DNA of 64,000 nt from Ministeria vibrans ATCC 50519 (GCA_943704425.1 CALSCP010000883.1:77120-141119); one strand, 5' to 3'; positions 7 through 64,000 are shown, numbered from the stretch's first letter. Made by a program: numbers and translations. Notes: generated from the letters alone by a model not told the origin.

Positions 7-3000
7 ATGACTATGAGTGACGTCCAAGTATTTGCACGTGGCTCGACCTTGCCCAACATTGCCACCGAGCTGTTCAAGACTGTCACGCAGAGCGGCAGTT
101 CGACAGCGACTGCCAGTGTCGCCATTGATGGCAGTCGCGACACGTATACAACGACGAGCAACAGTGATGGCGCGTGGTGGCAGGGAGACTTTGAGCAACT
201 CATTCTCGTGTCGCATGTACGTGTGTGGAATCGTGCCGATTCGCACGCAGCCCGCATGACAGGTATGCAGGTGGTGCTGTACGACGAGTCCGGCAGCGAA
301 ATTGTGCGCTCGGTGGCATTCAACGGGGTTCAACGTCATTATGACTACAATCCCATTGAGGCGGGTGTCTCGGAGGAAGACCGCCGTCGGGTGCGCTTCA
401 TTCGTGTCCAGTTGCCCACAGGCAATACCCTCTCGGTGGCCGAGATCGAGGTGCACGGTACACGCTCACGCACCACTCTGTGTCCCTCCGAAGACGATCC
501 GTACTATCCCAACTCCCTCACTTGTCTGTGGACCGAGGCGAACATTCCCGTGGCGAAGCGCTGTCGTGTTCACGAGGAGTGTCTTACGCAGTTCTGCAAT
601 CCCACCACGGGTAAGTGCGACTACTTCCCTTCGGCGCTGTTGCCGCAGCGGACCTGCTCGAAGATTGCGTCTCACAGTGAGCCAGACTATACACTGACGG
701 GTTGCTACTCGGACCAACACGACGCCCACACACGCCTAGGCCTGCTTCCATACGACGACGACACTATCGTGAGTTTACCCCGCTATGTGTACAACGCCAT
801 TCATACGCTCAACGGCTCGCTTGCACAGTCACTCACTGAACACGATCCTCTCTTGCCCTTGTCGGTGACCGCGGAAGACATGACCATCTACACATGTCGT
901 CACTTGTGTGTATGGCACGGCTACGAGTACAACGGCTTGAAGAAAGACTCGGGATGCTGGTGCCGAACGGTGGAGCGCAATGAAACCCTCTACGTTGCGT
1001 TTCCCACCTCACCCTACACCGCTCAAGAGTGTTTCTTGCACTGTTCTCGTGCGGGATATTCCGTTGCAGGTCTGCGTCCTGGTGGCGCATGCGGCTGTGC
1101 TCAGTCACTCGCTTCGCTCGCAACTGTCTCTTCAGGCGAATGCTCAGCTGTGTGCACTAGTGGCGATGCTTGTGGCGGTCCCAACGGCCGTGTGTCAGTG
1201 TACTCGCGAGCTCACTATGGCTATGTTGGATGTTATGCGGACAATGTTAACACCGGTGCAGTGGCACTGGTGGCGCTACAGACTCCGTCGCTTGCGGGCG
1301 GAGTGACGCCTCAAAAGTGCTTTGAGGCATGCACTGCGAGCTACAGCTATTTTGGACTGCGCGATGGCACCACTTGCGTGTGTGGCAACTCGCTCGGCGT
1401 CACCTCTCGCTCGTTGGACATTCACTGCAACCTGCCGTGCGTTGGAAACTCGTCAGTTGCCTGTGGTGGCGCGCTGGTGACGTCGCTGTATCGCACTGGC
1501 GACAGCTGGTCTGCGGTCAATGCCACATCACGAACTGTTAATTCTTTGTCTACGAGCGAGTGTGTCTCGAAGGCGCAATTGGACGCATGGGACAATGGAA
1601 CCACGGTGACGCAGGCGACGCTGGCCGACTGCCGCGACTTTTGCGCTGAATCTTCAGTGTACGCTGCGTGGGCACACACCTCGTTCAAGTGCCTGTGTCT
1701 CGACGACGCCTCAACGTACCTTCGTGATGGCACTGTGTCGTGCTCAAAACCCTTTGCTGTGTACCTGAGCGAGGCATCGAGTGCCGCCGCGCAGAGTACG
1801 TATGCCGTGTGTGACGCACTTCTTCCCATTGGCGACGAGGGAGCGCGTGACAGAGACAACACGACGCTGTTTCGTCGGCTGCACTCGAGCGGACCTTGTC
1901 GCTTGAGTGGCAATGCGCCCCTTGTTGCCGCGTGTTCAAGGGTGGCTGCCTGTGCAGACGCAACTCAGGGTCAGGAGTGCGCTGCGCTTGCTAGCAACGC
2001 CGCCGCGCGACTCCGTGGGTATGTCAAGGAGTGTCGCGTGGCCTCAGCCGGTGCGCCCGCCTGGATGAAGAACCGCTTTGACGAGTCACTCGTGTCCAAC
2101 GGTACGCTTCACCTAGGTGGCATGTCCCAAGACGGCACCATCGTGACTCCTTTGTCGGCGACATGGGATCGCAGTGAGCCCACGGGTGCGGGGCACGTTG
2201 AAGTAGACGAGGCACAAAACAGCGTTCTTCTCGCACGCATGTTGCGCACCATGGGCGATGCGTATGCGGAAGAACACGCCAACGAGGCACTGCCATACGC
2301 TGCCGACATTGGCAACACCGAACACTGCCACGGGGATCCCACCGAGTGTGCGGCCCTTTTCCCGGCTATTGTGCAGCTCTACGGGCGCTCAACATCGCTT
2401 GAGCTTGTGAGCGGTCGTCGTTTGCGTTTCCTGGCGCTCGCTTCGATCAACCGCAACCTGGTGGGCTTTCTCGAGCCCGAGAGTTTCGATCTCACCTTCA
2501 CGGCGTGTCTTGGCACAGCGCCACTTGTGTGCGACGTGGTCTCTGAGCGCTCTACGGATGCAGTGAGTGAGATTTTGTTTGACAACCTGGCGCTCGCGGA
2601 GGGTGTACGCTACTATGCGACGGTAAATGCGACCAATCGACTGGGTCTCACGAGCACCTCCTTTTCCGACGGCTTCTACTTTGATCCTACGGTGCCCGAA
2701 GGTGGTGCAGTGCGTGACATTGCACACATGCCCGAGGGCAGCGTCGACGGTGCGTCGCCTGTCGATGTGGACGCTGTTGTAGGCGCCACCAATGTGTCCG
2801 TGTGCTTTGAGGTGTTCCAGACGAGCGTCACAAGTCCGATGGAACTGTACGAGGTGGGGGTGGGCCTCTTTCCCGGCAAGGACGATGTGCTCAACTTTAC
2901 GACGGTTAGCGAAACACCCGAGCGTGACTACGTCGATGGCAATGGCACACGTTGGCTGTGTGTAGCACAGGACCTCTCTGAAAGCGGTTTGCTCAAGCAA

Positions 3001-6000
3001 GGGGTGCACTACTTTGTGACAGTTCGTGGACGCAACGCCGGGAAATTGTGGGCACAGGCGCTCTCAGATGGCTTTGTTGTTGACGGCACAGCACCCGTGG
3101 CGGCCACCGACGCGCTGCGAGTGGACGATTTTGACGTGACGCTGGGCTACCTCAACCAGGCGGTGTTGCAATTGTCGCTGTCGTGGTCTGCCTTTGAGGA
3201 GGACACCGACACGGAGATGACCCTGCATGTGTCGCTTGTGGACGAAACTGTCGCGCCGCCCCTGCCCATCGAGTGGCTTCTTCTGGGCGGTGTCGAGCGT
3301 GCCATGGGCCGTCACACCTTCTTCAACGTGTCACTCATTGTTGGTCATGCTTACCGTCTGCGCGTGCGTGCCACCAATCTTGCCAGTCTCTCAACTGTGC
3401 GCGCCACCTCTGCGCTTGTCTACGATCCCACTGCTCCCGCCGCCGGCATTGTGCGCATCTCGGCAGCCGTACCCGTGGCGCTCACACCGGTCAATGCCAG
3501 TGACGACTATGTGATTACAGGCGAAACGCTCTGCGTTGTCTTTGGCAACTTTAGCGACCCAGACGGCACACCCATGCTGAGCTACACGGCGAGCGTAAGC
3601 AACGACAGTCTCAGCGAGCACATTTTGTTCACTTCGGCGCCCATCGAGTCGACTGGCGCCCCCTTCTACCACGTTTGTCTTGCGCTCGCGCTCACGGACC
3701 GCAGCGACTACTACGTGCGTGTGGAAGGCACATCGGCAGCGGCGCTCACGTCGACTGCCGTCGCACCGTCCGTACGTGCTGTGCTGACAGGTCCCGAGGG
3801 CGGCGTCGTCTCGGACGGCCCCGAGGCGCCCTATGTTGACGAAGACTACATCAGTTGTATGGTGCAAGATCGAGTGTACGAGTCGCACTGGCATCAGTTT
3901 CATTCGGAAAGTGCAGGTGGCATTGATGGCTATCTCGTCAGTTTGTTTATCGATGGGGACACGACGAGTGTGCCGCTGGTGGAAGCGCAAGTGGGCGCGA
4001 GTGTGTCCAACTTTACGTTTGTCTTGCCGGCCGACGTGCAAAATGTCGCTGTGCACACGCGTGTGCGCGCATACAATCGTGCACGAGTATATTCGGACCT
4101 GATGAGCGACGGACTGCTGTGTGACACGACGGTGGTTGACACAAGTGCCATGACAGTACTGCCACTGTGCGAAGCCTCTCGTGTGCGTCTCACAGGCTTT
4201 GTTGTTGTCCGTACGCTGTTTACCTCCCCCGCTCAGGTGTACTTCATTTCGAACATTGGCGATATGTGTGTCTCGTGGAGCGGTGCTGAGGATCTCCAGT
4301 CGGGCGTGGCCAGCTATGAGGTGGCACTGTCGGCGCAGGAAGACGAGGACGACGCCGAGGTGTTCCGTTTTGCAGGTGATGCAACCGTCACGCGTTTTGG
4401 TGGCTTTGGTGGCGTCGCGAATCTGACGGAGCGCCATGGGCTCGATTTGCTGGTCCACTATGTTGTGGTGCGCGCTACAAACGGTGCCAATATGACGACG
4501 GAACATTCGTCGGGTGCCTTTGTGGTGGACAAGACTTCGGCGGTGATGGGTTCACTGAGCATCTCCAGCCTGGTTCACGTGGTGCCCGGCATTGGTGATG
4601 TGGCGCCGCGTGCTTTCTTGCCGAGCACCGACGAGTTGTGTGCGAGCTACATGGACGTGGCCGACCCCGAGAGTGGCGTGTATACCCTCGAGTATGGCGT
4701 GGTAGACGTACTGAATGGCTCATTGGTGCAAGAATACACCTCTCTGACAAGTGATGCCTCGGGAACCGTGTGTGTGTCGTCGCTTGGACTTGTACAGGGC
4801 CAGGCAGTTGCCATGCAGATGCGCGCCACCAACGGCGCTGGTCTCGTGTCGCTATTCCGATCGGACTCGGTTGTAGTGGACACGGTGGCGCCGACGGAGG
4901 GCACACTCGCGGTGCGCGACCTGAGCCCCGCTGGCTACTTTGTGGACACGCGCGATGTGGTGTGTGCCGTGTGGGACAATTTTGACGATGCAGTGAGCGG
5001 TCTCCAGAAGATGGAGGTGTCGCTGACAGATGTGGGCACGTCGACGTTGCTTGAGAGCACCGTGGGCTACAACAACGCGACGGCGGCGACGGCCGGTGCA
5101 GGTCTTGCGCTGGGATCGAGTGACGGAGTGTGCTTCAATCAAAGTGTGTTGGTGCAAGGACGTTCGTACCGCGTCACACTGGTGCTGACGGACTTTGTCG
5201 GACTTACGGCGAGTGCGACACGCGAGTTTCTTGTGGAGCGCACGGCACCCGTGATGACTACCAATTTCACGGTGCCATCGGGAATTGTGACGGGCACGGT
5301 GCAAGCGACGTGGGCCGTGGCCGACCCCGAGACGGGCATTGCAACGTGCGAATGGGGCTTTGGTACCCGGCCCAACATTATTGACTTGACAGCGCCGGCG
5401 CTGCTAGATGGAGCGGCGTGTCACACGGGTGACCTGGACACGAGTGTGATTGCGACAGGTATGAGTGCGTATGTGACGGTACACGTGACCAATGGCGCAG
5501 GCTTTCGCAGCACCTTCTCGTCGGCCGACTACCGCATGAATGCAGCGGTTGTGCGACGACGTCGTGAGACGACGAGTGACAGCAGCGGCGGCACCGACAC
5601 GATGCGCGTCATCAACACACCGCCCGTGGCGGGCGACGTCTACGACGGCGGGTCGCTGTCCGAACGTCGCTTTGACTACTCGTCGGACGCCACGCAGCTG
5701 CGCGTGTCGTGGGAGCGTTTCTTTGATCGCAACGTTGCGTTTGACATTGACGTTGCGATTGTGCAAAAGGGGACGCTCGAAGATCCGCGTCAGTACGACT
5801 TTAACACGGAGTTGGCTGAGGGCGCAGCGCTGTCGTCGTTTGGAACAGTTCTCATTGACTATGTCGCGGTGAATTCGTCGTTGCACAACACGTCGTTGAG
5901 TGCGGCGCTGCTCAGCGGCAGTCCGTCGTCGTTCCCGGAAGGAGTGCGTCTGAGTGCATGTGTGCGTGCGCGCAACATTGCCAATCTGGTGTCGCGCACT

Positions 6001-8745
6001 GTCTGTACCAATGGCGTGTTGTTGGACACGAGTGTGCCGACGGCGGGCACTGTGCTCGACGGTATGTTTGGCGTGGACCAGCGCATCCAGGGGAGCAGTA
6101 ATGGGCTTGCCGTGACCTTCCATGGCTTTTACGACGCGCAGTCGGCGCCGCTGACAGGCACTGCGGCGCCCGCAAGCGGTACATTGCCCGTGCCTGGCAC
6201 AGACCTCAGCAGCTGGGATGGTTCCTATGTGGCACCGGTGTTTCGTCATGGCCAGCCCATGACCTACGCGGTGGCGTTCTCGGAGATGAGCGGAGTGGAC
6301 GTGGACACGCTCGAATGGACCTCTGCGGGCACGCAGACTGTCTTTATGCTGACGGGTCTGACACTTGAACATGAGCACCTTTACTATGTGTATGTGTGTG
6401 CCTTCAACCCAATGCTGTTGCGCGTGTGTGCTCAAAGCGACGGTATTACGGTTCTCACTAACACAACAGATCTAGCGCTGTTCGACACAACTCCACCGCG
6501 AGCGTTCACTGTGGTTCGAGAGCCCACCGCTGCCGTCACGGCCAACGCTACCTTTTTAGCGGTACACTGGCCAGTGTGCGTCGACGACACGTCTGTATGC
6601 AGTCACTGTCTGGTTTACCACTTTGACAACACTACGGATGCGGTGGTGTCGGTCGACCGCGTGGTCTATCCTGGCGTGGACTTTGCCACGAACGCGCTTG
6701 CAATGGAATCGGGCCACGCCTACAGTGCGATTGTGTCGTGCTGCAATCAGGCGGACACCTGTCGAAATGTGTCCACTGCGCGCTTTACTGTGGATCTAAC
6801 ACCGCCACTGCTTGAGGTGGGACCGCTGGGCACGGACGTGGCGCTCTCGACCAATGCTAGTGAGGTGTTTGTGCAGCGTTTGGAGGGTGTGTCGCAGGGT
6901 ATTTCGGTGTTTGTGCGTACCCGTGATGTCGAAAGTACTGCAGCCACAGCGTCGTACCGTGTGTGGGTGAATGGAAGTTTGTCATCGACAGCCTGGACGC
7001 GTTTTGCCGTGGAGAAGTCGGTGCAAATTCAGATTGTGAGTGCCACGGATGCCGACACGATTGCGATTGAGTTGACCAGCACCAACTCGGTAGGTCTCGT
7101 GCGCACACGGACCGTCTCGCTTTCGATGGAACTGGCTACGTCGCGTCCGACACTCTCGCTGGTGTACCTGGGCGCGATGGCACAAACAGAGGCGACGCTT
7201 GTGTACACGCAGGCAAGCAGTGAGTCGCTGCAGCTGCGTGGCGCATTGGAGCCTTCGAGTGTGTCGTCACCTGTGAACATTCTCTATCGAGTGCACGCCT
7301 TTGAGTTTGCAGCGTTGACTGCTTCCGTCGACGGAAACGTCACGATTGCTGCATTGGATGCGGCGCGATCGATGGCGGCCGCGGACACGACCACGTCGTG
7401 GATGCGACTGGTGAATCGAAATGCGGCTGACGTGGTACTGAACATGACGGCGGTGGCGGATGGTCGTCTGGTGTATGCGGAGGCGGTCGCTGAGAACTTG
7501 GCGGGTGCACGGAGCGACGTGAGCGACAGTCTCGCGTTGCTGGTGGTGGACCACAGTGCGCCTGAGGTGCGTGTGTGGGACGGGCGCGTGTCGGGCGATG
7601 TGAGTGCCTTTGTGGAGGCAACGCCCGCCTGTTCGTGGTTTGTGACTGAGCCGCATGTGGCACTGGCGCAGGTGCGTGTGTGCATTCGCAACAATGTAAC
7701 ACACGAAGTGGCGTGTGCTACGCTTGATTCCACGACGCACACGCAAATCGAGCTGCGCGACGGCATGCATGCTTTTGCCGTGAGCGACGCCAACTTTGTC
7801 AACGGTACACGCTACTACTGTGCGGTGACGGTGACGAGCGAGGCTCAGTGGGTCAGCGAGACGGACGTCAGCGATGGTCAGGTAAAGTTCAATGCGGGTG
7901 CGATTGGCGTGTATGTGGATCGAGCACTGCCGCAACTATTTACCATTGCGATTCCGAGTGAGTCGCGCGAGAGCACGTCGCCCTGGGACCGCGTGCAGGT
8001 GCTGGTGCCACCAGCGGACTTTATTGGGGACAACACCAATGCGGTATGGATTGTGTTTAGCAGCGTGGCTGCGGGCATGCGGGTGTCGCTGGACGTGGTG
8101 GTGGAGCGTCGGAAGACGACGCTGAGCACGCACACTCCCGTGGTGTTGACCTTTTTGCCCGTGGAGAATGGTGCGACGGGCACGAGTGAAATGGCGGGCA
8201 GTCTGGCGGGGTCAGTAGAGCCGTCGAGTGCGGTGACATCGGCGAGTTCGGGGTGCGGAGGCACGCCGACGTACGGCACGGACGGCTCGGTGTCGGTGGA
8301 GGTGTGCACGAGTGCACAGGTGGGATTCCAGGAGGCCGCCGGTGGGTCCAACTTGTTTGCGATTGTGTTTGGCACAGTGTGGACACTGGCGGCGCTGGTG
8401 GCGTGTGTGATGCTGGGACGACTGTGGTGGATGCGACGACAGCTTGAGCAAGCGGACCCGGCGACTGGCAAGAGCTTTGGGGAACTGCGCTCTGAGCTGC
8501 AGCAGATGAGCACTATGCAGATGATTGAGAATGAGTGGCATGCGTCGCCCACCGCAGTACGCGACGCGTCTTTCATCGAGGACGTGCCCGAGTCGCTGGG
8601 TCTGCCGCCTCGCTGGCGCGGCAAAGTTGTCAAACCGATTGCGGATCTTATTAACCAGGGGGTCAAGGAGACGGGCCAGCGCGCTCCTCTCATTGACGTT
8701 GACCAGATTACCGACTCGTCGTCGGTGGACGTTCTTTTGGAGTGA
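7..8745 (+). CDS. Giant type I membrane/surface protein: F5/8C- or fucolectin-like domain, WSC domains, many FN3/Ig-like repeats, C-terminal TM; probably 5'-truncated by the window
   Basis: Uninterrupted 2912-aa ORF whose frame is open back to base 1 and which has no signal peptide at the listed Met. N-terminal WW..D....SHVRVWNR...LSVAEIEV (discoidin/fucolectin-like); WSC-type GYVGCY...TPQKCFEAC...YFGL..G..CVCGN...C..PC.GN....CGG; repeated Y..V.ATN.AGL...SDG..VD.T.P..G.V.D modules; hydrophobic FAIVFGTVWTLAALVACVML near the C-terminus. Confidence 0.85.
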   Translation: MTMSDVQVFARGSTLPNIATELFKTVTQSGSSTATASVAIDGSRDTYTTTSNSDGAWWQGDFEQLILVSHVRVWNRADSHAARMTGMQVVLYDESGSEIVRSVAFNGVQRHYDYNPIEAGVSEEDRRRVRFIRVQLPTGNTLSVAEIEVHGTRSRTTLCPSEDDPYYPNSLTCLWTEANIPVAKRCRVHEECLTQFCNPTTGKCDYFPSALLPQRTCSKIASHSEPDYTLTGCYSDQHDAHTRLGLLPYDDDTIVSLPRYVYNAIHTLNGSLAQSLTEHDPLLPLSVTAEDMTIYTCRHLCVWHGYEYNGLKKDSGCWCRTVERNETLYVAFPTSPYTAQECFLHCSRAGYSVAGLRPGGACGCAQSLASLATVSSGECSAVCTSGDACGGPNGRVSVYSRAHYGYVGCYADNVNTGAVALVALQTPSLAGGVTPQKCFEACTASYSYFGLRDGTTCVCGNSLGVTSRSLDIHCNLPCVGNSSVACGGALVTSLYRTGDSWSAVNATSRTVNSLSTSECVSKAQLDAWDNGTTVTQATLADCRDFCAESSVYAAWAHTSFKCLCLDDASTYLRDGTVSCSKPFAVYLSEASSAAAQSTYAVCDALLPIGDEGARDRDNTTLFRRLHSSGPCRLSGNAPLVAACSRVAACADATQGQECAALASNAAARLRGYVKECRVASAGAPAWMKNRFDESLVSNGTLHLGGMSQDGTIVTPLSATWDRSEPTGAGHVEVDEAQNSVLLARMLRTMGDAYAEEHANEALPYAADIGNTEHCHGDPTECAALFPAIVQLYGRSTSLELVSGRRLRFLALASINRNLVGFLEPESFDLTFTACLGTAPLVCDVVSERSTDAVSEILFDNLALAEGVRYYATVNATNRLGLTSTSFSDGFYFDPTVPEGGAVRDIAHMPEGSVDGASPVDVDAVVGATNVSVCFEVFQTSVTSPMELYEVGVGLFPGKDDVLNFTTVSETPERDYVDGNGTRWLCVAQDLSESGLLKQGVHYFVTVRGRNAGKLWAQALSDGFVVDGTAPVAATDALRVDDFDVTLGYLNQAVLQLSLSWSAFEEDTDTEMTLHVSLVDETVAPPLPIEWLLLGGVERAMGRHTFFNVSLIVGHAYRLRVRATNLASLSTVRATSALVYDPTAPAAGIVRISAAVPVALTPVNASDDYVITGETLCVVFGNFSDPDGTPMLSYTASVSNDSLSEHILFTSAPIESTGAPFYHVCLALALTDRSDYYVRVEGTSAAALTSTAVAPSVRAVLTGPEGGVVSDGPEAPYVDEDYISCMVQDRVYESHWHQFHSESAGGIDGYLVSLFIDGDTTSVPLVEAQVGASVSNFTFVLPADVQNVAVHTRVRAYNRARVYSDLMSDGLLCDTTVVDTSAMTVLPLCEASRVRLTGFVVVRTLFTSPAQVYFISNIGDMCVSWSGAEDLQSGVASYEVALSAQEDEDDAEVFRFAGDATVTRFGGFGGVANLTERHGLDLLVHYVVVRATNGANMTTEHSSGAFVVDKTSAVMGSLSISSLVHVVPGIGDVAPRAFLPSTDELCASYMDVADPESGVYTLEYGVVDVLNGSLVQEYTSLTSDASGTVCVSSLGLVQGQAVAMQMRATNGAGLVSLFRSDSVVVDTVAPTEGTLAVRDLSPAGYFVDTRDVVCAVWDNFDDAVSGLQKMEVSLTDVGTSTLLESTVGYNNATAATAGAGLALGSSDGVCFNQSVLVQGRSYRVTLVLTDFVGLTASATREFLVERTAPVMTTNFTVPSGIVTGTVQATWAVADPETGIATCEWGFGTRPNIIDLTAPALLDGAACHTGDLDTSVIATGMSAYVTVHVTNGAGFRSTFSSADYRMNAAVVRRRRETTSDSSGGTDTMRVINTPPVAGDVYDGGSLSERRFDYSSDATQLRVSWERFFDRNVAFDIDVAIVQKGTLEDPRQYDFNTELAEGAALSSFGTVLIDYVAVNSSLHNTSLSAALLSGSPSSFPEGVRLSACVRARNIANLVSRTVCTNGVLLDTSVPTAGTVLDGMFGVDQRIQGSSNGLAVTFHGFYDAQSAPLTGTAAPASGTLPVPGTDLSSWDGSYVAPVFRHGQPMTYAVAFSEMSGVDVDTLEWTSAGTQTVFMLTGLTLEHEHLYYVYVCAFNPMLLRVCAQSDGITVLTNTTDLALFDTTPPRAFTVVREPTAAVTANATFLAVHWPVCVDDTSVCSHCLVYHFDNTTDAVVSVDRVVYPGVDFATNALAMESGHAYSAIVSCCNQADTCRNVSTARFTVDLTPPLLEVGPLGTDVALSTNASEVFVQRLEGVSQGISVFVRTRDVESTAATASYRVWVNGSLSSTAWTRFAVEKSVQIQIVSATDADTIAIELTSTNSVGLVRTRTVSLSMELATSRPTLSLVYLGAMAQTEATLVYTQASSESLQLRGALEPSSVSSPVNILYRVHAFEFAALTASVDGNVTIAALDAARSMAAADTTTSWMRLVNRNAADVVLNMTAVADGRLVYAEAVAENLAGARSDVSDSLALLVVDHSAPEVRVWDGRVSGDVSAFVEATPACSWFVTEPHVALAQVRVCIRNNVTHEVACATLDSTTHTQIELRDGMHAFAVSDANFVNGTRYYCAVTVTSEAQWVSETDVSDGQVKFNAGAIGVYVDRALPQLFTIAIPSESRESTSPWDRVQVLVPPADFIGDNTNAVWIVFSSVAAGMRVSLDVVVERRKTTLSTHTPVVLTFLPVENGATGTSEMAGSLAGSVEPSSAVTSASSGCGGTPTYGTDGSVSVEVCTSAQVGFQEAAGGSNLFAIVFGTVWTLAALVACVMLGRLWWMRRQLEQADPATGKSFGELRSELQQMSTMQMIENEWHASPTAVRDASFIEDVPESLGLPPRWRGKVVKPIADLINQGVKETGQRAPLIDVDQITDSSSVDVLLE

Positions 8746-23542: not shown

Positions 23543-25979
23543 ATGGAGGTACACTTCGAGTGTCTTAATAATCATTGTGTCTTTTTCCTGACTCGTCAAT
23601 TTGGCGTTCCTTTGACTTCCCTCCCTCCTTCGACAGTCGCAAGAAGGTAAAGCATGTCAACACGAAAGGGATCCGCTGCGCAGTGGTGCTGAAGGATGTC
23701 CCCATTTGACAGGACCGCCTCCGATTGTGTCGAGCAAGCCAACGTTTGTGCCTAAGCCGCGCACGACCGTTGTCAAGGCTCCCCCACGCCCTGCGCCTTC
23801 GCGAGACACCGCCCGACCGACCAACGCAGCGGCCGCGCCGCCTGCACCGGCCGAGACGCCCAACGGGAGGCAGACGGCCGTTGCCGATTCTGCGCCCAAC
23901 GCCGCTCTCTCGAAAGCACCCTCGTCCGGGAGACCCCCGCCACCGCGCGCGCCAGCAGCTGCAGCCAAAGAAGCAACAGCAACATCCGAACAGACGGAAG
24001 CGACGGGAAGGGAGACATCGCTGTCGCAGGCGCCAGTCAAGAAGCCTCCTGTTGCCGGGCGACCGCCGCCGCCGCGAGCGCCCGTCAAGAAGGGTTCGCA
24101 CACAACAACAACAACGGAGTTGACGTGGTCGTGTTAACACAGGAGTTGTCTTTCCTTCTTTTCAGAGACGAGTGAGGGATCCGTGAATCAGACTGTATCA
24201 AATTCAGAGCCAGTGCAATTGCAAGCACCACCACGAAAGCACGCTGCGAAAAAGGACAAGGAAACGGTAAGCAGACGTAAAATAAAAAAGCGACTCATTT
24301 ATGTTTGTTTCATCTATAGACGACAGAACGCAACGTTAGTCGAGAGCTCTCGCCTCAATCTTCAACGACAACAGAGACACCCACAGCACCAATACCACCA
24401 GTAGCAACCGAATCCCCCAAACGCGGTGCCCCTCCTCCCCGACCCGCTCCCCCGGCACGACCACCACCCCCAACCCGCAAACCAGAAGGTGCAAAGAAGA
24501 AAAAAGAAAGAAAAAAAAAGCGAAGCATGGTTGCAATAACACCCATACATTGTCAATCACTCTTCCGTCCAATTTTAGCCAACCGGTCCACTGCGCTCCC
24601 CACCGCCTCTACTAGCACCACTGCCTCCACCACATCCACCACTACTACTCCTTCTTCGTCGACCACCAGTGTCGCTTCCTCGTCTACTCCGTCAAAGGCC
24701 GATCTTGTTGAGAGTTCTCTTGTGCGCACCAGAACAACTCCCGCTCCCACGTCAAACGTGGTCGGATCAAAGGTCCTTGAAAACGAGCGGAATTCAAATC
24801 AAAACTCAGTGATCCATCATGTTTACATCAGTTTCCTCTCTAATCGTCACTCCATTATGTTTGCACGCTACACTTTTTCTTCATGCAATCCCATCCACTC
24901 GATCACACACACGGCATATTCCCCACAGACACACTCACACCCTCCACCACCACCACAGGTCCATAACGCCATTGCCCCACGTCGTCTCGAGCGGCCCCCC
25001 GACAGCGTCTACGCCGCTGCTCATGCCGCTGCCATGGTTGCAGCAGGTAACGAAGAGCCCGATGAGTATGCTCTCAAGATGATGATCCCTCAGGAGAAGG
25101 GTCTCGATCCCTTTCGCGGTGGTTTCCCCGGTAACTATATGTATCTATTGTTTAATCTTTCAATCTTTGTTTTCGCCTTTCTTCCTTTTACACTCTGACT
25201 CTCACGACGTCTTTACGTTTTCAAATCTTTCTTTTTTTTCACACACTTTCGCTCATCAACCATCTCAACTAAACAATGTTTTTAATCTCCCAACCATAAA
25301 CACACGCACACACGAATTATATCTATACATATTTTTATACATACTAACAACTCCCCACCCTCAGCGGTTGACCTCATCACCGCCGTCAGCACGAGCGGCC
25401 ACCGTGTCCCCGATGGTATGACTGTCCGTCGCACCTCCTGTGTCGGTTACCTCTACAAATTGGGTGCCATGCGCAAGAACTGGAAGTACCGCTACTTTGA
25501 ATTGAACACCATGTCGACCAGTCCCGATCCCAACGATGCTCCGGGACTGCGCTACAGAGTCGATCATACGTCGACGGAACTCAAAGTATCGTTAATTGCA
25601 ATTGCACTTTTTACTTTTTGTGTTTTTTTTTTGTTTGTTTGAGAGTACTGTCTCTCTCTCTCTATCACTTTGTATCACTTTGTTTCTGTCTCTTCACTTT
25701 GCTTCTTTCTCCTTCCTCTCTCTCTCTCTTTGCTTTGTTTCTTTTTCCTTCTTCTCTTTCTCTCTCTCTGACACTTGCTTCGTCTCTTTCTTCCATGCTC
25801 CTTAGGGGTTTATCGCCTTGTCGACTGTCAAGAGCGTCGAGATTGCCAATTTGCCGTCCGACGGTTTCTACTACTTCGACATCAAAGCGGGCGATCGAAC
25901 TTATCAGATGCGCACTTACAACAAGCAATGCATTGCCGTGTGGGTGGCGCTTCTCAAGGCTTGCATTGGCAAGTATTAG
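23543..25979 (+). CDS. Proline-rich protein with a C-terminal PH domain, multi-exon
   Basis: PxxP/RPPPPR-rich exons, then SCVGYLYKLGAMRKNWKYRYFEL ... GFIALSTV ... FDIKAGDRTYQM ... WVALLK, a typical PH domain. The 5' micro-exons (ME|SQE|GPPP) are tentative. Confidence 0.8.
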
Positions 25980-26399
25980 CTGAACCTGTGAAACTTTACA
26001 CTTCTATACTCAAAAGAAACCAACACCCTTTTTTTCAACCCTCGAAAAACACTTTTGTCACGATAAAACCCAAACTTCTCGTTTTATAGTCAAACAAGTC
26101 ATTTTTTCGATAGAGTGAGTGCCACTCCTCCGTCAAAGGTGCGCGAGAAAATTCTGGCTTGATTGAGCGAGTTGATCAGTGATCACGAAAATGATCAGTG
26201 AATATATAACGCGCCGTTTCCCTTAACAAAAGAGACCACCTTTACACGTGCATTGCTCTGCTTCTGTGTTGGCCATTCGTTGCCCGGACCGTGCGGCAGA
26301 GGTCTTTCTGGGCGCATAAAGTGAGCGAAAAGGACTTACAAAACACAGATTTATTTCACAATTGGACCGAATGGCCCACACGAGACGGTCGCACGAGAC

Positions 26400-26529
26400 A
26401 GCAGGAGATTCAGGGTTAGTTGTGATCAACTGATCGCAGCCCATTACGAGTTGTCTTTTTCTGACGCGAACATCCCTGTTCGACCTTCTACGGTCGGATG
26501 GCCCAATTGGATAAGGCGCCTGCCTACGG
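26400..26529 (+). tRNA. tRNA-Arg(ACG): Circularly permuted tRNA-Arg(ACG) with two T-loop introns. Exon order in the mature tRNA: 26492-26529, 26400-26417, 26447-26450, 26473-26486
   Basis: Reassembled 74-nt sequence GGTCGGA TG GCCC AATTGGATA AGGC G CCTGC CT ACG G|A GCAGG AGATT CAGGG TT|CGAG|T CCCTG TTCGACC T. It has a 7-bp acceptor stem, a D arm with G18G19 and Arg identity A20, a 5-bp anticodon stem, a 5-bp T stem with TTCGAGT loop, and an A15:U48 Levitt pair. Confidence 0.9.
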
Positions 26530-26541
26530 TCACCAGTTTCG

Positions 26542-26561
26542 TTTTTTTTGTTTTTTTTTTC

Positions 26562-26601
<40 letters not shown>
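26542..26601 (+). terminator. Oligo(T) Pol III-type terminator after the permuted tRNA trailer
   Basis: T8 begins 13 nt after G37 and is followed by further long T runs. Confidence 0.65.
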
Positions 26602-26602
<1 letters not shown>

Positions 26603-26631
26603 ATCATTCGACTTAATTCTTTCACAAATTG

Positions 26632-26744
26632 TATAACTTCGGTTATCCTTTGAACTTTCACCTTACGAGGTGACCGTGTGACCGTCTCACGACTCACGCC
26701 TGGCCGGGCGAGTCTTATTCGTCTATCGCGAAAGCATTTTTTTT
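26632..26744 (+). ncRNA. Candidate structured small RNA of unknown family
   Basis: Consecutive hairpins ATAAC-TTCG-GTTAT, TCACCT-TACG-AGGTGA, GACTC..GAGTC and GC-GAAA-GC, ending in T8. No family motif recognised. Confidence 0.3.
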
Positions 26745-27410
26745 AGATTTCAAAGTTTTAATCTTTATGTTTTACCATTTTTTTTATTCAACTTACTCGT
26801 AAGATTGATGTGCGTTCCTCCACCTTTGCTTCTACCATCAGTCACCACTCAACACATCCCCTCCCCTTCCCTTACGTTCATTTTTCCTGATTTCTTTTCG
26901 TCCTTTTGATAATCATTCGACCGACTTCTCTCACTCCCTTCGCAGTCGTCTCGTCCGCTGAATCGCTCTCCCCAAGTCCCAACCAACACCCCCTATCTGT
27001 TCATTGCATCTCCAGCCCTTATCGGTCTATATAATCTGGTGTGAGACACAAGACGCACCCGCTAGTGCAGTGAGGACCGNNNNNNNNAAAACCCCCCTCC
27101 CGTCCACGTAACCCTAAAGAGCGTCCTCCTCGCGCCACGCACACTCCCCCCTGCTTCCCACGCGCACCCACCGCTCCCCGATGCCCTTTGTCGCCCTGCC
27201 CCACCGCGAAATTCCGCTCAAGTTCAACACATTTCTCTCTTATTGTGTCATCGTCAGGCCCACGTCCTCTCTCGCCGCCCCCACACGCTCTCACACGCTG
27301 TGACACATGCATTGCGTCTATCACCTCACCCCTTTGCTGTGTCCTCTCTTGTGCTCATTTGCTTTTGTTTTTTTTTTTTTCTTTTTCCTTCTTTGTGGTT
27401 TTTCTAGACA

Positions 27411-28661: not shown

Positions 28662-28888
28662 TTGACAGCAGTAAAACAATAAACAAATAGTATTCATTTA
28701 AATCGACGAATCACTTCTTTGTTGATGATTATCAATAGTAAATAAATTTAATAATAATTAGAAGAATACAACCCATTTATTAATGATACAGTCACCACGC
28801 GAATAATAATTAATAAAGTAATAGTCTTGTTTTTCTTTTTTGCTCTGAATAATAACATAATTATAACTCCGCCTGCGCTTTTTTCCCG

Positions 28889-30085
28889 ATGCTTGCTGTA
28901 AGTTGTGGCCATTGGGCGTTACAGGACACGACTATCACCTATTTGGTGGGGCGCGTCGATGGGAAGGAACTTGTGGGACATCGCATTGTGGTGGAAGTGT
29001 GTGAGACCAATGGAGAATGGCGCGAGTGCGATGAGATTGCGCTGAGTACGAGCGACCCTTGCAGTGCAATTCAACGGTCACTGACGGGCCTGAAGAGGAG
29101 GACGCGCTATCTTGTGCGAGCAGCACTACAGGAGGAGGCAGACGGAAATCTCGGCGAGTACAGCGAAGCAGTCGAAGCACGCACAGCACAGGCTCGCGTG
29201 GCACGCAGGCCACTGGAGACGGACGACGAGTACGACCAGGCCCGTCGCCGCCACCAGGACTCCTATCTCGAGCGTTTCCTCGCGATGGTGGCCGAGTTGC
29301 GCGCCCAACCGGAAATTGTCGTGTGGCGCTTCCGCGTCTTTCCGCCGCTCGCCGACGACGCCATTGACGAGATCTGTCGCGAGTTTTACCCGTGCGGAAT
29401 CCACGAGAGCATTCGCTCCTTCTAGTACGCGATTAAAAGAGGTGGACGTCCGCACTGCTTGTTGGCTAACTCGGCAGGTTGTTGGTCGTCTCGTAGCAAG
29501 CAGACAAATGGTCTGCAGCTGCGCTGGATTCTGCGCAGCGATAATGCATTCGACCCGACCGTTCATGTCGAGGAGACGGCGGAGCAGGCCCCGAAGAGCG
29601 TCGACGAGGTGGACTGGGAGCCAGCGGACATTTACGTGGGCGAAGGGGCCGTGTCAATAGTTCCGCTGCGTGAAATTTTCTCCCGTGATTGGGGCTTTGG
29701 CTTTGACGTTGAGGAAGATCGCAAGTTTGGCGGAAAGACCTTTGTGGAAAGCGACTTTCTAGAGTCGCTGCGCTGCTTTGATGGTTTCTACTATTATCAT
29801 TCGCCAGTGTTTGTGTGTGCCACACAAGAAGCGGATCCGCCCTGCATCAAGGGCGACGACCATGGCGCCGACTTCTCCGCTGACATGGTCTTTGACTTTC
29901 ACTCCTATCTCGAGTATGTCCTTGCCTCGTATGCGCTTTGTGGGCGCACCTATTATGCTGTCGGTTGGTTTTCAGGCATGAACGGCACTCGTGTGTGCAC
30001 TTCGCGCGAGTACTGGGCAAAGCGGCCGTATGATCTGCGGGAGATTGTTGACACGAAGGGAAGTGTGGTACCACAATATGAATAG
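28889..30085 (+). CDS. Hypothetical protein with an FN3-like N-terminus and an SMI1/KNR4(SUKH)-like domain; 2 exons
   Basis: SLTGLKRRTRYLVRA...G.YSE is FN3-like. A GTACGC...CGTAG intron joins FPPL....IDEI.......IHESIRSF|YKQTNGLQLRW, resembling the SMI1/KNR4 P..L..FY...NG signature. Confidence 0.6.
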
Positions 30086-35634: not shown

Positions 35635-35787
35635 AGAATGAAACTGAAGTGAAGTGAATCTGTCACTCTGACTGAAGTCATTGATCTAATCTAATCTCAA
35701 GTTTAAGAAAAATTGAAAATTAGCACTTTTTGACTTTTGCCGAAGGCCCTTTGAGGAGGGTGTGTTTTTTTTATCAAGCTTTGGACA

Positions 35788-38264
35788 ATGCCGACGCGTT
35801 CACGGGTGCTGCGCGTCGCCATCGTCGCGACGTGCATCAAACTGCTGTTACTGCCGACTGATCTGTACCGCAGCACAGACTTTGAGGTGCACCGCAATTG
35901 GCTGGCCATCACGCATTCGTTGCCATTGCGCGAATGGTATGTTGAGGTAGGCGCTGTGTGTGAGCGAATGAGCGAGTTTTTTTTTTTTTCCATCATAATA
36001 ATAATAATATTTCCAGGACACTTCACAGTGGACTCTCGACTATCCGCCGCTCTTTGCGTGGTTCGAGTGGCTGCTGAGTCAGCTTGCCGTCTTGTGCGAC
36101 CCTCGGATGGTCGAGGTGGATGCGCTGGAGTACGCGTCGACGGCAACAGTGGTGTTCCAGCGCCTGTCCGTTGTGCTGGCGGATGTGCTTCTCGTTGGCG
36201 CTCTTGTGTCGTACTGCCGCTCGTTTGCGCGCAACGAACGACGCCCCATCCGCACCATTGTCACTGCCGCGCTCACCCTCTGCTCCTTTGGTCTCGTTGT
36301 CGTCGATCACATTCACTTCCAAGTCAGTCGACGCACTCTGGAAGGATCACATTACATTACATTAGTCATACTCATTGTTGCTCTTTGTATAGTACAACGG
36401 ATTTCTCTTTGGCCTTTTAGTGGCCAGCATTGCCGCCTTCCGCCACCGCCAGTACCTTGCAGGCGCGCTCCTCTTTGCCCTTCTGCTCAACTTCAAACAC
36501 ATCTTTCTCTATGTTGCTCCCGCTTACTTCATTTTTCTCCTTCGCGCCTACTGTTTTCACGTCGAGTCTGCAACCGCTCAAGGGTAAACCCCTACAATCA
36601 TGCCATCGTATCTAATTCGTTTTTTTCTCGAAAAAAAAATAGGAGAAATGCTCTGAGTTCTTTTTCGCTTTCGCGCTTTCTCTCACTCGCGGGAATTGTC
36701 GCTAGTGTGTTTCTGGTCACGTGGATTCCCTTTATCTATCTTGGACAAATTCCTCAAGTGAGTCACAACGAGAAGATTTGATAAGTGTAGCCCTAATCCT
36801 AATAATGACAAGTGCATCCCGAATGACAAAATGTAACCCTAACTCCAATGGCACACTCTCTCTTCCTTCCTTTGCGAATTAGGTCTTGTCCCGTCTCTTC
36901 CCATTCAAGCGTGGTCTTGTTCATTCCTATTGGGCTCCCAACTTTTGGGCTTTGTACAATGTCGCTGACAAATTGCTCGCAAAAGGTAAACAAAAGTAAA
37001 AAAAAGTGAACAATTGTCTCATTCCATTAAAAATACACTTACAATATTTTCTCTTGTATAGCTTTTTCAGTGTCTATTGGAACGGGAGTCCTTACGGGTG
37101 GACTAGTGGGTGACGTTGCAGTGTCACATGCTGTACTCCCCACAGTCAAACCCATTGCGACCTTTGTCTTGTCCTTTGTCACTATGATTGTAAGTATTTT
37201 TAAGTGTGTGTGTGTGTGTTTGTGTATATACATTGAGTCATTGAGGCACACTTCCTTTCTTTCTTTTAATGATCGAAAATTGAATGCAACTATTGCGCAC
37301 TCACAAACTCCAAACTCTACTCACAATCACCTCTCTCTTCTTCAAACTTATACTTAGGTTCCATTAATCCGCCTGTGGAAACGACCCAATGTTGCACACT
37401 TTGAACGGACAGTGGTTCTCTGTGCATTCAGTGCGTTTCTCTTTGGATGGCATGTTCATGAAAAGGCTGTTCTCCTCATGCTTATTCCATTAGGGTAATA
37501 ACAATCACAAGAAATCACTCGATTCATTTTAAACTTTTGTTTGTGTCTTGGGGTTTAGTCTTCTATCCACTGAATCTGCCAGTATGGCTCGCGTGTTTAC
37601 AATTCTGTCCATTTCCGGTTCTTACAGCCTTTTTCCTCTTCTCTTCAGACCACAAGGTAGCATGATACACGCACCACAAAGATAGCACAAAGACACGAAC
37701 AGCACACATTTTCACATTTTCACATTTTCACCCACTCACAAACATACATAATTATCATATTTTGTCTCACTCACGCGCATTTTAGAAACACTCACCAAAG
37801 TGACCCTTCTGGGAATGTACACTCTGATGCAATGGTTCTTCCTGCATTTTCTCTTTCACGATGCATCTTCTTCTTTTGGCATTGCCCACCAATCTGCGTC
37901 ACTCAAAGCCAAAGCGAACAGCCCAAATAGCGCCTTCTCCGCTTCTGACCGGGACCCTTCTTCTGCCTTCTCTTCATCGTCTTCAAATGTCATTGCATCT
38001 ACTCTCATGTATGGTCCTCCGTCACCACTTACTGCCACGTCTTTTCCCCGTCAACTTGGTGGTCTCCCAATCGCACACGACCCACTGTGTCTTTCGCTCC
38101 TGGAACGTTTGTACCTCATTGGATTTCTCCCCCTCTTTGTCTCGACTGATTTGATCGCGCCACTTCTCTTGCCCCATTTGCCCTTTTTGCCTCTCATGTG
38201 CACTTCCGTCTATTGTGCATTGGGTGTTATGTGGTCGTGGTGGTGTCTCCTTGTTGTAAGATAA
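35788..38264 (+). CDS. ALG8: Dol-P-Glc:Glc1Man9GlcNAc2-PP-Dol alpha-1,3-glucosyltransferase, multi-exon
   Basis: [25 protein letters not shown]|..[22 protein letters not shown]|[26 protein letters not shown]...[32 protein letters not shown]. Confidence 0.96.
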
Positions 38265-38407
38265 AAGCAATAATATTATTAAATTTTTAAATATGCCCAA
38301 TACTTACAAAAAATATTAGTCGACCTTTTGATTATAATAATAATAATAATAAAAATAATAATAATAATTAATTTATTATTATAATAAATTTATTATTATA
38401 ATTATTT

Positions 38408-39378
38408 TTATATTATTTTGTGTGTCTCAAGTCGCATTCGCGCAATCTCCGCTCGCAATCGCTCTATTTCTCGATCGCGTGTCTGCTTCATCAACTCATG
38501 CGCTCGTCGTGTCTGACCAATGCCCAGCTCCAGAATTTTCTGCTCTGCTCGGCGTTCTTCAGCTATGAATGCACCATATCAGTAACAGAAAAAAAAAAAA
38601 AAAAAAAAAAAAATGGGAGGGACCAGTGACCCTGACATGTCGCACGAGTATGCCTGATACTGCCGCATTTTTTCTCGTGTGGCGTACTTGCGTGACGCAA
38701 CTTTGCAATGTTTGAGCAAATCTCTGAATTTTGCTCCGTATGACTGCGCACTGTTGCCTGCAACACTTCCAATCGCCCTTGGAGTGCATTGCGAGCAGAC
38801 TCGCTGTCGCGAATCTGACGATTCTTGTCTGCTATCTCCTTTCGCAAGACGGCCGTCTCAAGCTACGCCAAAATCGTCCGTTCTCTTTCTCTTTCTCTCT
38901 CTCTCTCTCTCTCCTTTCCACACTACCGTTCGCGCTCGCAACTTTTCCGTTGTCTTCGAGTACAACTCTTCTACCCGCTCCAAGTCGAGCCGCAGCGACA
39001 TCAGCGTTGCCTCCATTTTGCGAGTTTCTTCTTCATGCTGCAAACCCCAAACCTCAAATTTTGTGTCGCAATCTCTCCCTCTCTCTCTCTTTTGCTCCCC
39101 ACCGTCTGGCCACAGGTTGCCATCCGAGTATTTGTCTCCTTCACTTGAATCTCCATTGATTGCATCTCCTTGAGCTGCACCGCATAATATCAAACCGGAG
39201 CGCGTTTCAAACACGTCCACGACAATTCAAAACATACCATTGCCTCTTCACGCGCTTGACTTTCAGCGAACGCTTCATTCAACGACTCCTTTGTCTCCTC
39301 TAGAATCGTTCGCTTTGACTTGAGTTCTTGGATCACCGTCAGCATTCGATCGGCGATTCGATTCGCATCGACCGGCAT
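38408..39378 (-). CDS. Coiled-coil hypothetical protein, multi-exon
   Basis: Several minus-strand E/K/R/L-rich heptad-like exons separated by GT-AG introns; no family recognised. Confidence 0.6.

Positions 39379-46612: not shown

Positions 46613-64000
<17,388 letters not shown>

Follow-up and report, generated by a model that had tools for sequence, protein, structure and literature searches.

Evidence for a permuted tRNA-Arg(ACG) gene with two nested T-loop introns in a probably non-photosynthetic marine eukaryote

A 64,000-nucleotide stretch of the Ministeria vibrans ATCC 50519 assembly (GCA_943704425.1, CALSCP010000883.1:77120-141119), which we call the window, very likely contains a real and functional nuclear gene for the cytosolic tRNA-Arg(ACG) whose two halves are encoded in inverted order. 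In this gene (the C883 gene) the 3' half is located upstream of the 5' half, which makes it a type II permuted gene with its junction between positions 37 and 38 (37/38), and its T loop appears to be interrupted by two nested introns. We also lean toward a broader reading, of which we are somewhat less confident: that a system of tRNA genes disrupted by bulge-helix-bulge (BHB) motifs, like the one in the red alga Cyanidioschyzon merolae, works in a non-photosynthetic, flagellum-bearing marine eukaryote. It would be the first such system outside the algae and the archaea, and it would include 37/38 and D-stem permutation, ectopic and nested T-arm introns, and a 4-nt micro-exon. This kind of gene is known; the lineage is new, and the arrangement of the T loop is unusual.

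The C883 locus, its paralog, and its introns

A first-pass annotation of the window had proposed a circularly permuted tRNA-Arg(ACG) gene at this place. The 5' half, the 12-nt trailer, and the T run lie where it had put them, and the limits it gave for the 3' half (from A38 to U73) and for the spacer also held. The parts of the locus are as follows.

26350-26365, + strand: upstream TATA-like/CAC box, TTTATTTCACAATTGG, with its CAC 43 nt 5' of A38; probably an RNA polymerase III (pol III) promoter element
26381-26399, + strand: leader, predicted to be lost by the 3' cut before A38
26400-26417, + strand: exon a of the 3' half, A38-U55 (3' strand of the anticodon stem, variable loop, 5' strand of the T stem, U54, and U55), identical to the paralog on contig C491
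26418-26446, + strand: putative intron 1, 29 nt, between U55 and C56; relaxed BHB; absent from the C491 paralog
26447-26450, + strand: exon b of the 3' half, a 4-nt micro-exon, C56-G59, with which the T loop is restored as in the paralog
26451-26472, + strand: putative intron 2, 22 nt, between G59 and U60; strict hBHBh' motif
26473-26486, + strand: exon c of the 3' half, U60-U73 (U60, 3' strand of the T stem, 3' strand of the acceptor stem, and discriminator U73), identical to the C491 paralog
26487-26491, + strand: spacer TCTAC, 5 nt, which loops the acceptor stem shut; 5/5 identical in the paralog
26492-26529, + strand: 5' half, G1-G37 (5' strand of the acceptor stem, D arm, 5' strand of the anticodon stem, and C32 U33 A34 C35 G36 G37), 38/38 identical to the paralog
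26530-26541, + strand: trailer, TCACCAGTTTCG, 12 nt, paired with the leader and predicted to be lost by the 5' cut after G37
26542-26602, + strand: T runs (T8 at 26542-26549, then T10, then more than 40 T), the probable pol III terminator

From 26400 to 26529, the 3' half, the spacer, and the 5' half follow each other in the order of a type II permuted gene. As the first-pass annotation had described, the strands of the acceptor and anticodon stems pair across the halves, with 7 bp in the acceptor stem on either side of the spacer, and 26381-26389 of the leader pairs with 26532-26541 of the trailer. This helix is present in minimum-free-energy (MFE) folds. This leader-trailer duplex has a free energy of -9.5 kcal/mol (z = -2.9, relative to shuffled leaders). 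It had also been noted that leader G(-3) and A(-4) are able to pair with C32 and U33, and the junction does offer the 32:-3 and 33:-4 pairs, together with 3-nt bulges and a 9-bp outer helix. Finally, the locus looks like a single transcription unit: the box lies upstream, T8 begins at 26542, there are no such signals between the halves, and neither the spacer nor the exons contain a run of four or more T.

In the 29.7-Mb assembly there are just two matches to the 38-nt 5' half, even if up to 3 mismatches are allowed. The second one, at C491:39632-39710 (minus strand), lacks introns; its parts come in the same order, with the spacer TCTAC and a T run, and its T loop is normal. All 74 tRNA positions and all 5 nt of the spacer are identical between the two loci, while the 200-nt upstream flanks show no real alignment (118 matches versus 114 for shuffled sequence). 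Both leaders end in AGAC. The trailer of the C491 copy is TTACCTGCTTC; its duplex with the leader (-7.7 kcal/mol) is kept by a double change from U:A to C:G, and the ACC:GGU block of this helix is conserved in both loci. We argue from this comparison that the permuted layout is real and is under selection.

The paralog also bears on whether the locus might be a chance likeness, or an artefact in which the assembly joined fragments of a conventional tRNA gene. The assembly is a draft with 2860 contigs and with gaps, and the T tract downstream of the gene breaks short-read contigs, so it is fair to raise the issue. But the same layout is present at a second locus with different flanks, and we found no conventional copy that could have been the source of the fragments (the assembly has no contiguous copy of the Arg-ACG anticodon stem-loop). 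Furthermore, a DNA contig from run X2, which may be the source sample of the window, spans 25779-26502 with zero differences and thus runs from the leader through both introns and the spacer into the 5' half. In an independent study of an algal-culture metagenome from 2024 (X6), a contig spans 25906-26479, both introns included. We consider an artefact or a chance likeness to be highly improbable. The stretch is present in runs from about 10 studies, including seawater metagenomes. In run X2 there is also a joint that skips 55 nt, with CGAG between its two sides; we rejected it as a sign of spliced RNA, as X2 is a DNA run and the joint is that of the C491 paralog.

The first-pass annotation was correct about the ends and the stems of the 3' half, but it overlooked the insert in the T arm. 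The T stem encloses 58 nt (26416-26473) instead of the expected 7-nt T loop. If the halves are simply joined, the result is a 125-mer for which ARAGORN gives no tRNA call. Once both introns are taken out, the joined 74-mer is called as tRNA-Arg(ACG), as had been expected of the reassembled molecule; the 3' half becomes identical to the C491 paralog (36/36); and the T loop reads TTCGAGT. As for the raw locus, it had been predicted that standard tRNA finders would miss it, and they do: there is no call from ARAGORN, whether it is run on the locus or on the window, and no Rfam match, either at the gathering threshold or at E ≤ 10.

We found intron 1 by a blind enumeration of BHB motifs in the 3' half, before its effect on the T loop had been seen. 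The enumeration picked cuts after 26417 and before 26447, and removal of these 29 nt joins U55 to CGAGU. The motif has a 5-bp helix h, 3 of 4 pairs in the central helix H, two 3-nt bulges, and a helix h' of 9-10 bp, and it can form whether intron 2 is present or removed. Intron 2 has a complete hBHBh' motif, in which h is the 5-bp T stem, all 4 pairs of H can form (UUCG/CGAA), there are two 3-nt bulges, and h' consists of 4 bp that close a 7-nt loop. Because this central helix needs U54-U55 beside C56-G57, the motif would form only after intron 1 has been excised (in the unspliced context, h is 0). In the unconstrained MFE fold of the precursor without intron 1, the leader pairs with the trailer, the anticodon stem forms between the two halves, the spacer closes the acceptor stem, the D stem is present, and the T stem carries the BHB of intron 2. 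For both introns, the predicted cut sites are exactly those that are needed to restore the tRNA. Also, the real insert has one two-step intron solution, and 20,000 shuffles of the insert gave none. So far as these motifs can tell, the insert in the T loop consists of two nested introns, at 55/56 and 59/60, around a 4-nt micro-exon.

The main alternative is that the family is real, while the C883 copy is a dead duplicate of the C491 gene whose T loop (and B box) was destroyed by inserted DNA and which is not processed. We think that this is unlikely, although several observations weigh against a functional gene at the C883 locus. First, the intron-less C491 paralog encodes the identical tRNA and could supply all of it, which would leave the C883 copy dispensable, and gene conversion could in principle maintain the identity of the exons without any selection on the C883 copy. 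Second, the BHB of intron 1 is imperfect, with a G.A mismatch in its central helix, and it is thermodynamically unfavoured: its register lies outside the MFE fold of the full precursor (-31.4 versus -53.1 kcal/mol). Third, contigs of poly(A)-type RNA leave 26167-26757 uncovered. Fourth, just 2 of the 4 pairs in the central helix form at the 37/38 junction, so this motif is not a strict BHB (the junction motif of ordinary eukaryotic 37/38 introns is relaxed in a similar way). Fifth, intron 2 holds one T5 run, which could weaken the point about a single transcription unit. And sixth, ARAGORN calls one conventional Arg(ACG) gene, on contig C585, and the absence of others is unproven because only part of the candidates were scored in the whole-genome searches (63 of 508, 150 of 912, and 150 of 11,425). 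The C585 gene is atypical: its D stem is drawn with 3 bp and its anticodon stem with 6 bp, and the gene gives only a partial alignment with the product of the C883 gene.

On the other hand, the inserted DNA consists of two segments with BHB boundaries that restore the T loop exactly, which none of the 20,000 shuffled inserts does. Nor does the locus look like a pseudogene. There are no substitutions in the 74 exon positions or in the spacer, while the flanks have diverged to randomness; the stems are intact; and the locus has retained its upstream box and terminator as well as the 32:-3 pair and, with a compensatory change, the helix between leader and trailer. Other tRNA genes in the genome also have T-arm introns with BHB-like motifs, as described below.

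It has also to be asked if the locus is a tRNA-derived element with another role, either as a pol III transcript that gives structured or tRNA-half-like small RNAs or as a repeat. The long structured insert and the unusually long T tract that follows the gene might suggest this. However, there are just two copies in the genome, so the unit is not a repeat family. Every position of the tRNA is intact and can be reassembled, and the layout matches that of 7 other permuted genes for different amino acids. We consider this explanation to be very unlikely, and we prefer to view the locus as a working permuted tRNA gene.

Other permuted genes, promoters, and a proposed route of maturation

A search that allows for permutation had been recommended in the first-pass annotation. 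We used a pattern from T box to D box with a filter for acceptor complementarity, as well as a covariance model in the permuted layout, and verified eight permuted tRNA genes in the genome, with the C883 gene among them. The pattern was not enriched by itself (83 matches versus 114 for a reversed control) and was useful only after the acceptor filter. Joining of halves by brute force at all boundaries, with ARAGORN set to allow introns, was rejected as far too permissive, and we relied on an explicit parse of the stems instead. The genes are as follows.

Arg-ACG, on C883 (this locus) and C491: junction 37/38
Arg-CCG, on C335: junction 37/38, with a 29-nt T-stem intron
Lys-UUU, on C437: junction 37/38, with a 44-nt T-stem intron
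Gly-UCC, on C2280: junction 37/38
Gly-CCC, on C2647: junction 37/38
Cys-GCA, on C1897: junction 37/38
Arg-UCG (L006), at C2431:223936-224077, minus strand: permuted in the D stem at about 24/25 (a CG dinucleotide makes the point ambiguous), with a canonical 12-nt intron at 37/38

The spacers of the permuted genes are 5-15 nt, and in 8 of 8 a run of 4-15 T follows the 5' part. All 7 genes with a 37/38 junction have the 32:-3 pair, which is C:G in six and U:A in one and hence shows covariation. At the sites that would restore the tRNA, BHB-like motifs are present in the T-stem introns of both Arg-CCG (3 of 4 pairs in H and an h' of 8) and Lys-UUU (4 of 4 pairs in H and an h' of 6). In both, h is 0, and a strict BHB filter (h of at least 2) overlooked them. 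Altogether, ectopic T-arm introns are found in at least three permuted genes of this genome. We also note that the 8-nt spacer of the Arg-UCG gene has a T5 run, which is odd in a pol III unit.

Upstream of 5 of 7 permuted genes and of 12 of 21 conventional tRNA genes there is a TATA-like element followed by CAC(A)WTT, about 28-43 nt before the first coding base. For the motif CACA?WTT, whose background is 4.3% per 45 nt, these counts correspond to P ~ 3e-6 (permuted) and P ~ 8e-12 (conventional), and the C883 box is very similar to that of the conventional Trp gene. If pol III is directed by an upstream box, this would account for the transcription of genes whose A and B boxes are inverted, as has been argued for C. 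merolae. An element of the form (T)ATAGCACA(T)TTGG is also seen about 30-55 nt before conventional tRNA genes (for example at L152, L158, L161, L163, L168, and L169), which suggests that transcription of tRNA genes may be driven by an upstream promoter in this organism. Two matches to the promoter box elsewhere in the window, at 48095 and 48238, were rejected: they lie inside a CT-rich repeat, and there are no pol III genes there. The repeat (48040-48330) is a minisatellite with the unit TATCACTTTGTGTCTTTCTCT, it runs into an assembly gap (N from 48331), and it accounts for the overlapping mechanical open reading frames (ORFs) at 47864-49373.

As for enzymes, the genome encodes two members of PF01974 (tRNA_int_endo, of the Sen2/Sen34 type; 60.8 and 54 bits), a homologue of Sen54 (PF12928, 38.9 bits), and RtcB (PF01139, 179.8 bits). 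The splicing endonuclease leaves 2',3'-cyclic phosphate and 5'-OH ends, and these are then ligated directly, circularisation included. The Sen genes together with RtcB would fit cleavage followed by direct ligation. Given the paralog with its 74 identical exon positions, the box and the terminator, the six further genes, and these enzymes, we agree with the first-pass annotation that the gene is most simply viewed as circularly permuted.

We infer the transcription of the C883 gene, each of the cuts and ligations, the circular intermediate, and the order of the steps, and we propose the following route. Pol III would start about 20 nt upstream of A38, as directed by the TATA-like/CAC box, and would stop in the T run. 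The transcript would consist of the leader, the 3' half in three exons, the spacer UCUAC, the 5' half, and the trailer. The acceptor, D, and anticodon stems would form across the halves, and the body would then resemble an ordinary pre-tRNA. An endonuclease of the Sen2/Sen34 type, with Sen54, would cut the BHB of intron 1, and an RtcB-type ligase would join U55 to C56. This joint would create the hBHBh' of intron 2, which would be cut in turn, followed by ligation of G59 to U60. The leader and trailer would act like a 37/38 intron that has been opened, each serving as one of its ends, with cuts after G37 and before A38, and ligation there would yield a circle of 79 nt. RNase P and a 3' endonuclease would then excise UCUAC, CCA would be added, and A34 would presumably be deaminated to inosine. 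That intron 1 is removed before intron 2 is something that we infer from the modelled structures.

Conventional tRNA genes, the host, and the neighbourhood

The first-pass annotation had also suggested a search for a conventional Arg(ACG) gene, and the outcome was mixed: a eukaryote-type gene was not found, and the atypical gene on C585 was. For this search we built an Arg(ACG) covariance model from 12 distinct conventional genes of environmental eukaryotes. Among the scored candidates from the assembly there was no conventional gene of the eukaryotic type; the top matches were an Arg-GCG in a dense array, Arg-CCU, Lys, and Cys (51-63 bits), and both of the permuted Arg-ACG loci were seen only as half matches. 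The general tRNA model RF00005 had at least 63 matches, which is a lower bound rather than a census.

The rebuilt 74-nt tRNA is close to conventional Arg(ACG) genes of environmental eukaryotes. A scan of metagenomes gave 120 loci, or about 119 environmental genes, with its 21-nt core, all of which have the conventional layout. The scan found no permuted Arg layout in the metagenomes, and thus no relatives that have it. Judging by these matches, the product that we rebuilt from the C883 locus should be a typical cytosolic tRNA-Arg(ACG).

Some of the conventional genes lie in compact arrays. At C585:~35680-37080 (L176:7521-8919; L148), at least 9 tRNA genes lie within 1.4 kb, with T-rich spacers between them: Pro-AGG, Pro-UGG, two copies of Leu-CAA, Lys-UUU, the atypical Arg-ACG, Cys-GCA, Arg-UCU, and Ser-GGA. 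The Leu-CAA copies are just 74 nt long and lack a long variable arm, and the array is non-canonical for a eukaryotic nucleus. Contig C2083 also has compact arrays, at ~6860-8070 (L024:1018-2224) and at 38115-38540, with Val-GAC, two Val-UAC, Arg-UCG, Arg-GCG, Pro-UGG, two Ala-UGC, and one call with a 4-nt anticodon. There, neighbouring genes are so tightly packed that the model of the permuted layout matches across their boundaries. Finally, 24 of the 63 best matches to the tRNA model in the assembly are on C1523 (~55 kb). This contig may be an organelle genome or a foreign element; if it is an organelle genome, it is probably mitochondrial, because the assembly has no photosystem genes.

What kind of organism is this? 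The first-pass annotation had supposed a non-algal host of the animal-relative type, and we have indirect support for this. The best matches of the ELP1 protein are to early fungi, animals, and Capsaspora (34-36% identity), and the window includes a gene for an axonemal dynein heavy chain. We found no genes for photosystem reaction centres in the assembly. We also did not find a DHFR-TS fusion in it: DHFR and TS are on different contigs, and the N-terminal extension of TS is short. The unfused state is said to be that of opisthokonts and Amoebozoa, as Stechmann and Cavalier-Smith reportedly concluded in 2002. Because of ELP1, the dynein, the lack of photosystem genes, the unfused DHFR and TS, and the presence of the stretch in seawater and algal-culture metagenomes, we believe that the organism is probably a marine, non-photosynthetic, flagellated eukaryote on the animal/fungus side.

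An intergenic gap of about 1 kb between neighbouring genes holds the tRNA gene. In these neighbours (24092-25364 and 29424-29497), RNA contigs reveal short spliceosomal GT..AG introns of 53, 72, 72, 186, and 234 nt, and there are poly(A) sites near 26038 and 28710. At 28728-28924 (core ~28757-28803), an AT-rich sequence at the 3' end of a gene with a cystatin domain has a word depth of 13,450 in the DNA runs, as compared to about 37 around it. Its flanks vary widely among both DNA and RNA contigs, as if it were a short repeat that is highly dispersed. At 27029-27079, one DNA contig of run X2 has about 19 substitutions plus several small deletions within 50 nt, with matching sequence to the left and right. 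The contig may come from a divergent allele, or this intergenic or 5'-untranslated stretch may have a second copy. Farther away, on the + strand at 7-8745, there is an unbroken ORF of 2912 amino acids with WSC and F5/8 type C (discoidin) domains, which probably encodes a very large secreted or surface carbohydrate-binding protein.

Relation to known systems, and what the gene would mean

To our knowledge, all eukaryotic permuted tRNAs reported since 2007 come from one red alga, a handful of very small green algae, or a nucleomorph of green-algal origin. The 34 permuted tRNA genes in a 2014 review were all from unicellular algae or from the archaeon Thermofilum pendens (PMC3978253), and a review from August 2026 still confines the eukaryotic ones to algae (PMC13578239). 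The first-pass annotation knew of no report from a lineage such as this, and in the library that we searched, no paper pairs permuted tRNAs with choanoflagellates, Capsaspora, apusomonads, or Thecamonas.

Of the genes already described, the one most like it is the tRNA-Gly(CCC) gene of C. merolae, which is permuted at 37/38, has an intron at 55/56, and matures via a circle (Soma 2007; Soma 2013, PMC3728597; PMC3978253). There, excision of the intron comes first, and the termini are then joined to form the circle (PMC3728597, PMC3978253). The C883 gene shares the 37/38 junction and the ectopic BHB intron at 55/56, and it adds an intron at 59/60, a 4-nt micro-exon, and a nested BHB. More broadly, the two systems have in common a TATA-like element upstream, a T stretch downstream, and no such signals between the halves, along with homologues of Sen2, Sen34, and Sen54 and permutation points that also lie outside the anticodon loop. 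On the other hand, the host here would be a non-photosynthetic marine eukaryote with opisthokont-like genes rather than a red alga, and whereas expression and the circular intermediate have been demonstrated in C. merolae, they are predicted for the C883 gene.

As summarized in PMC3978253, the permuted genes that Maruyama (2010) described from Ostreococcus, Micromonas, and the nucleomorph of Bigelowiella natans are mostly permuted at 37/38 and are AT-rich upstream, as are the genes that we studied, and their intervening sequences are short (5 bp in B. natans, like the C883 spacer). In that summary, just one of the permuted genes from the green-algal lineage has an intron (at 27/28), whereas here at least three have T-arm introns and one is permuted in the D stem.

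Archaea provide parallels for the nested introns. The permuted genes of T. pendens (Chan 2011, PMC3218864) and the tRNA genes with nested introns in Crenarchaeota have strict hBHBh' motifs and 59/60 as a favoured break, as seen here, and the last BHB of an archaeal nested intron forms after the earlier intron has been removed, as we predict for intron 2. The motifs of C. merolae and T. pendens have been described as independent and not nested, whereas intron 2 of the C883 gene is nested. Also, in T. pendens the junction is at 59/60 and the CCA is encoded, while in the C883 gene the junction is at 37/38 and the CCA is not encoded. And archaeal systems have archaeal promoters and a homo- or hetero-oligomeric EndA, as opposed to the eukaryotic host and the pol III-type T run that we see here.

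Ordinary eukaryotic introns at 37/38 have the same cut sites, the same pair between position 32 and the third-from-last nucleotide of the intron, and a 3-nt bulge at the 3' site. The difference is that the "intron" of the C883 gene is open (it consists of the leader and the trailer), the order of the gene is reversed, and ligation would yield a circle.

These comparisons matter because views on how permuted tRNA genes arose have been influenced by their algal distribution; examples are that they were retained in "early" algae or that they are connected with endosymbiosis. If our interpretation is correct, then the link to algae would be broken by a second eukaryotic lineage that is unrelated and has the whole syndrome. 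Either the splicing of BHB motifs anywhere in a pre-tRNA would be an old and widely retained ability of the Sen endonuclease, or the scrambling of tRNA genes would have at least three independent origins.

There may also be consequences for annotation. As ARAGORN and the Rfam tRNA model both miss the C883 gene, the tRNA sets of protists that were annotated in this way may be badly incomplete. Among the candidates that we scored, the only eukaryote-type tRNA-Arg(ACG) genes in this organism are the permuted ones, and with such an annotation, the isoacceptor that reads CGU, CGC, and CGA would seem to be missing. Finally, if the genes work as we propose, then this organism would be a heterotroph in which to study how Sen cuts BHB motifs outside of the anticodon loop, how pol III deals with genes whose A and B boxes are inverted, and how nested introns are spliced in order.

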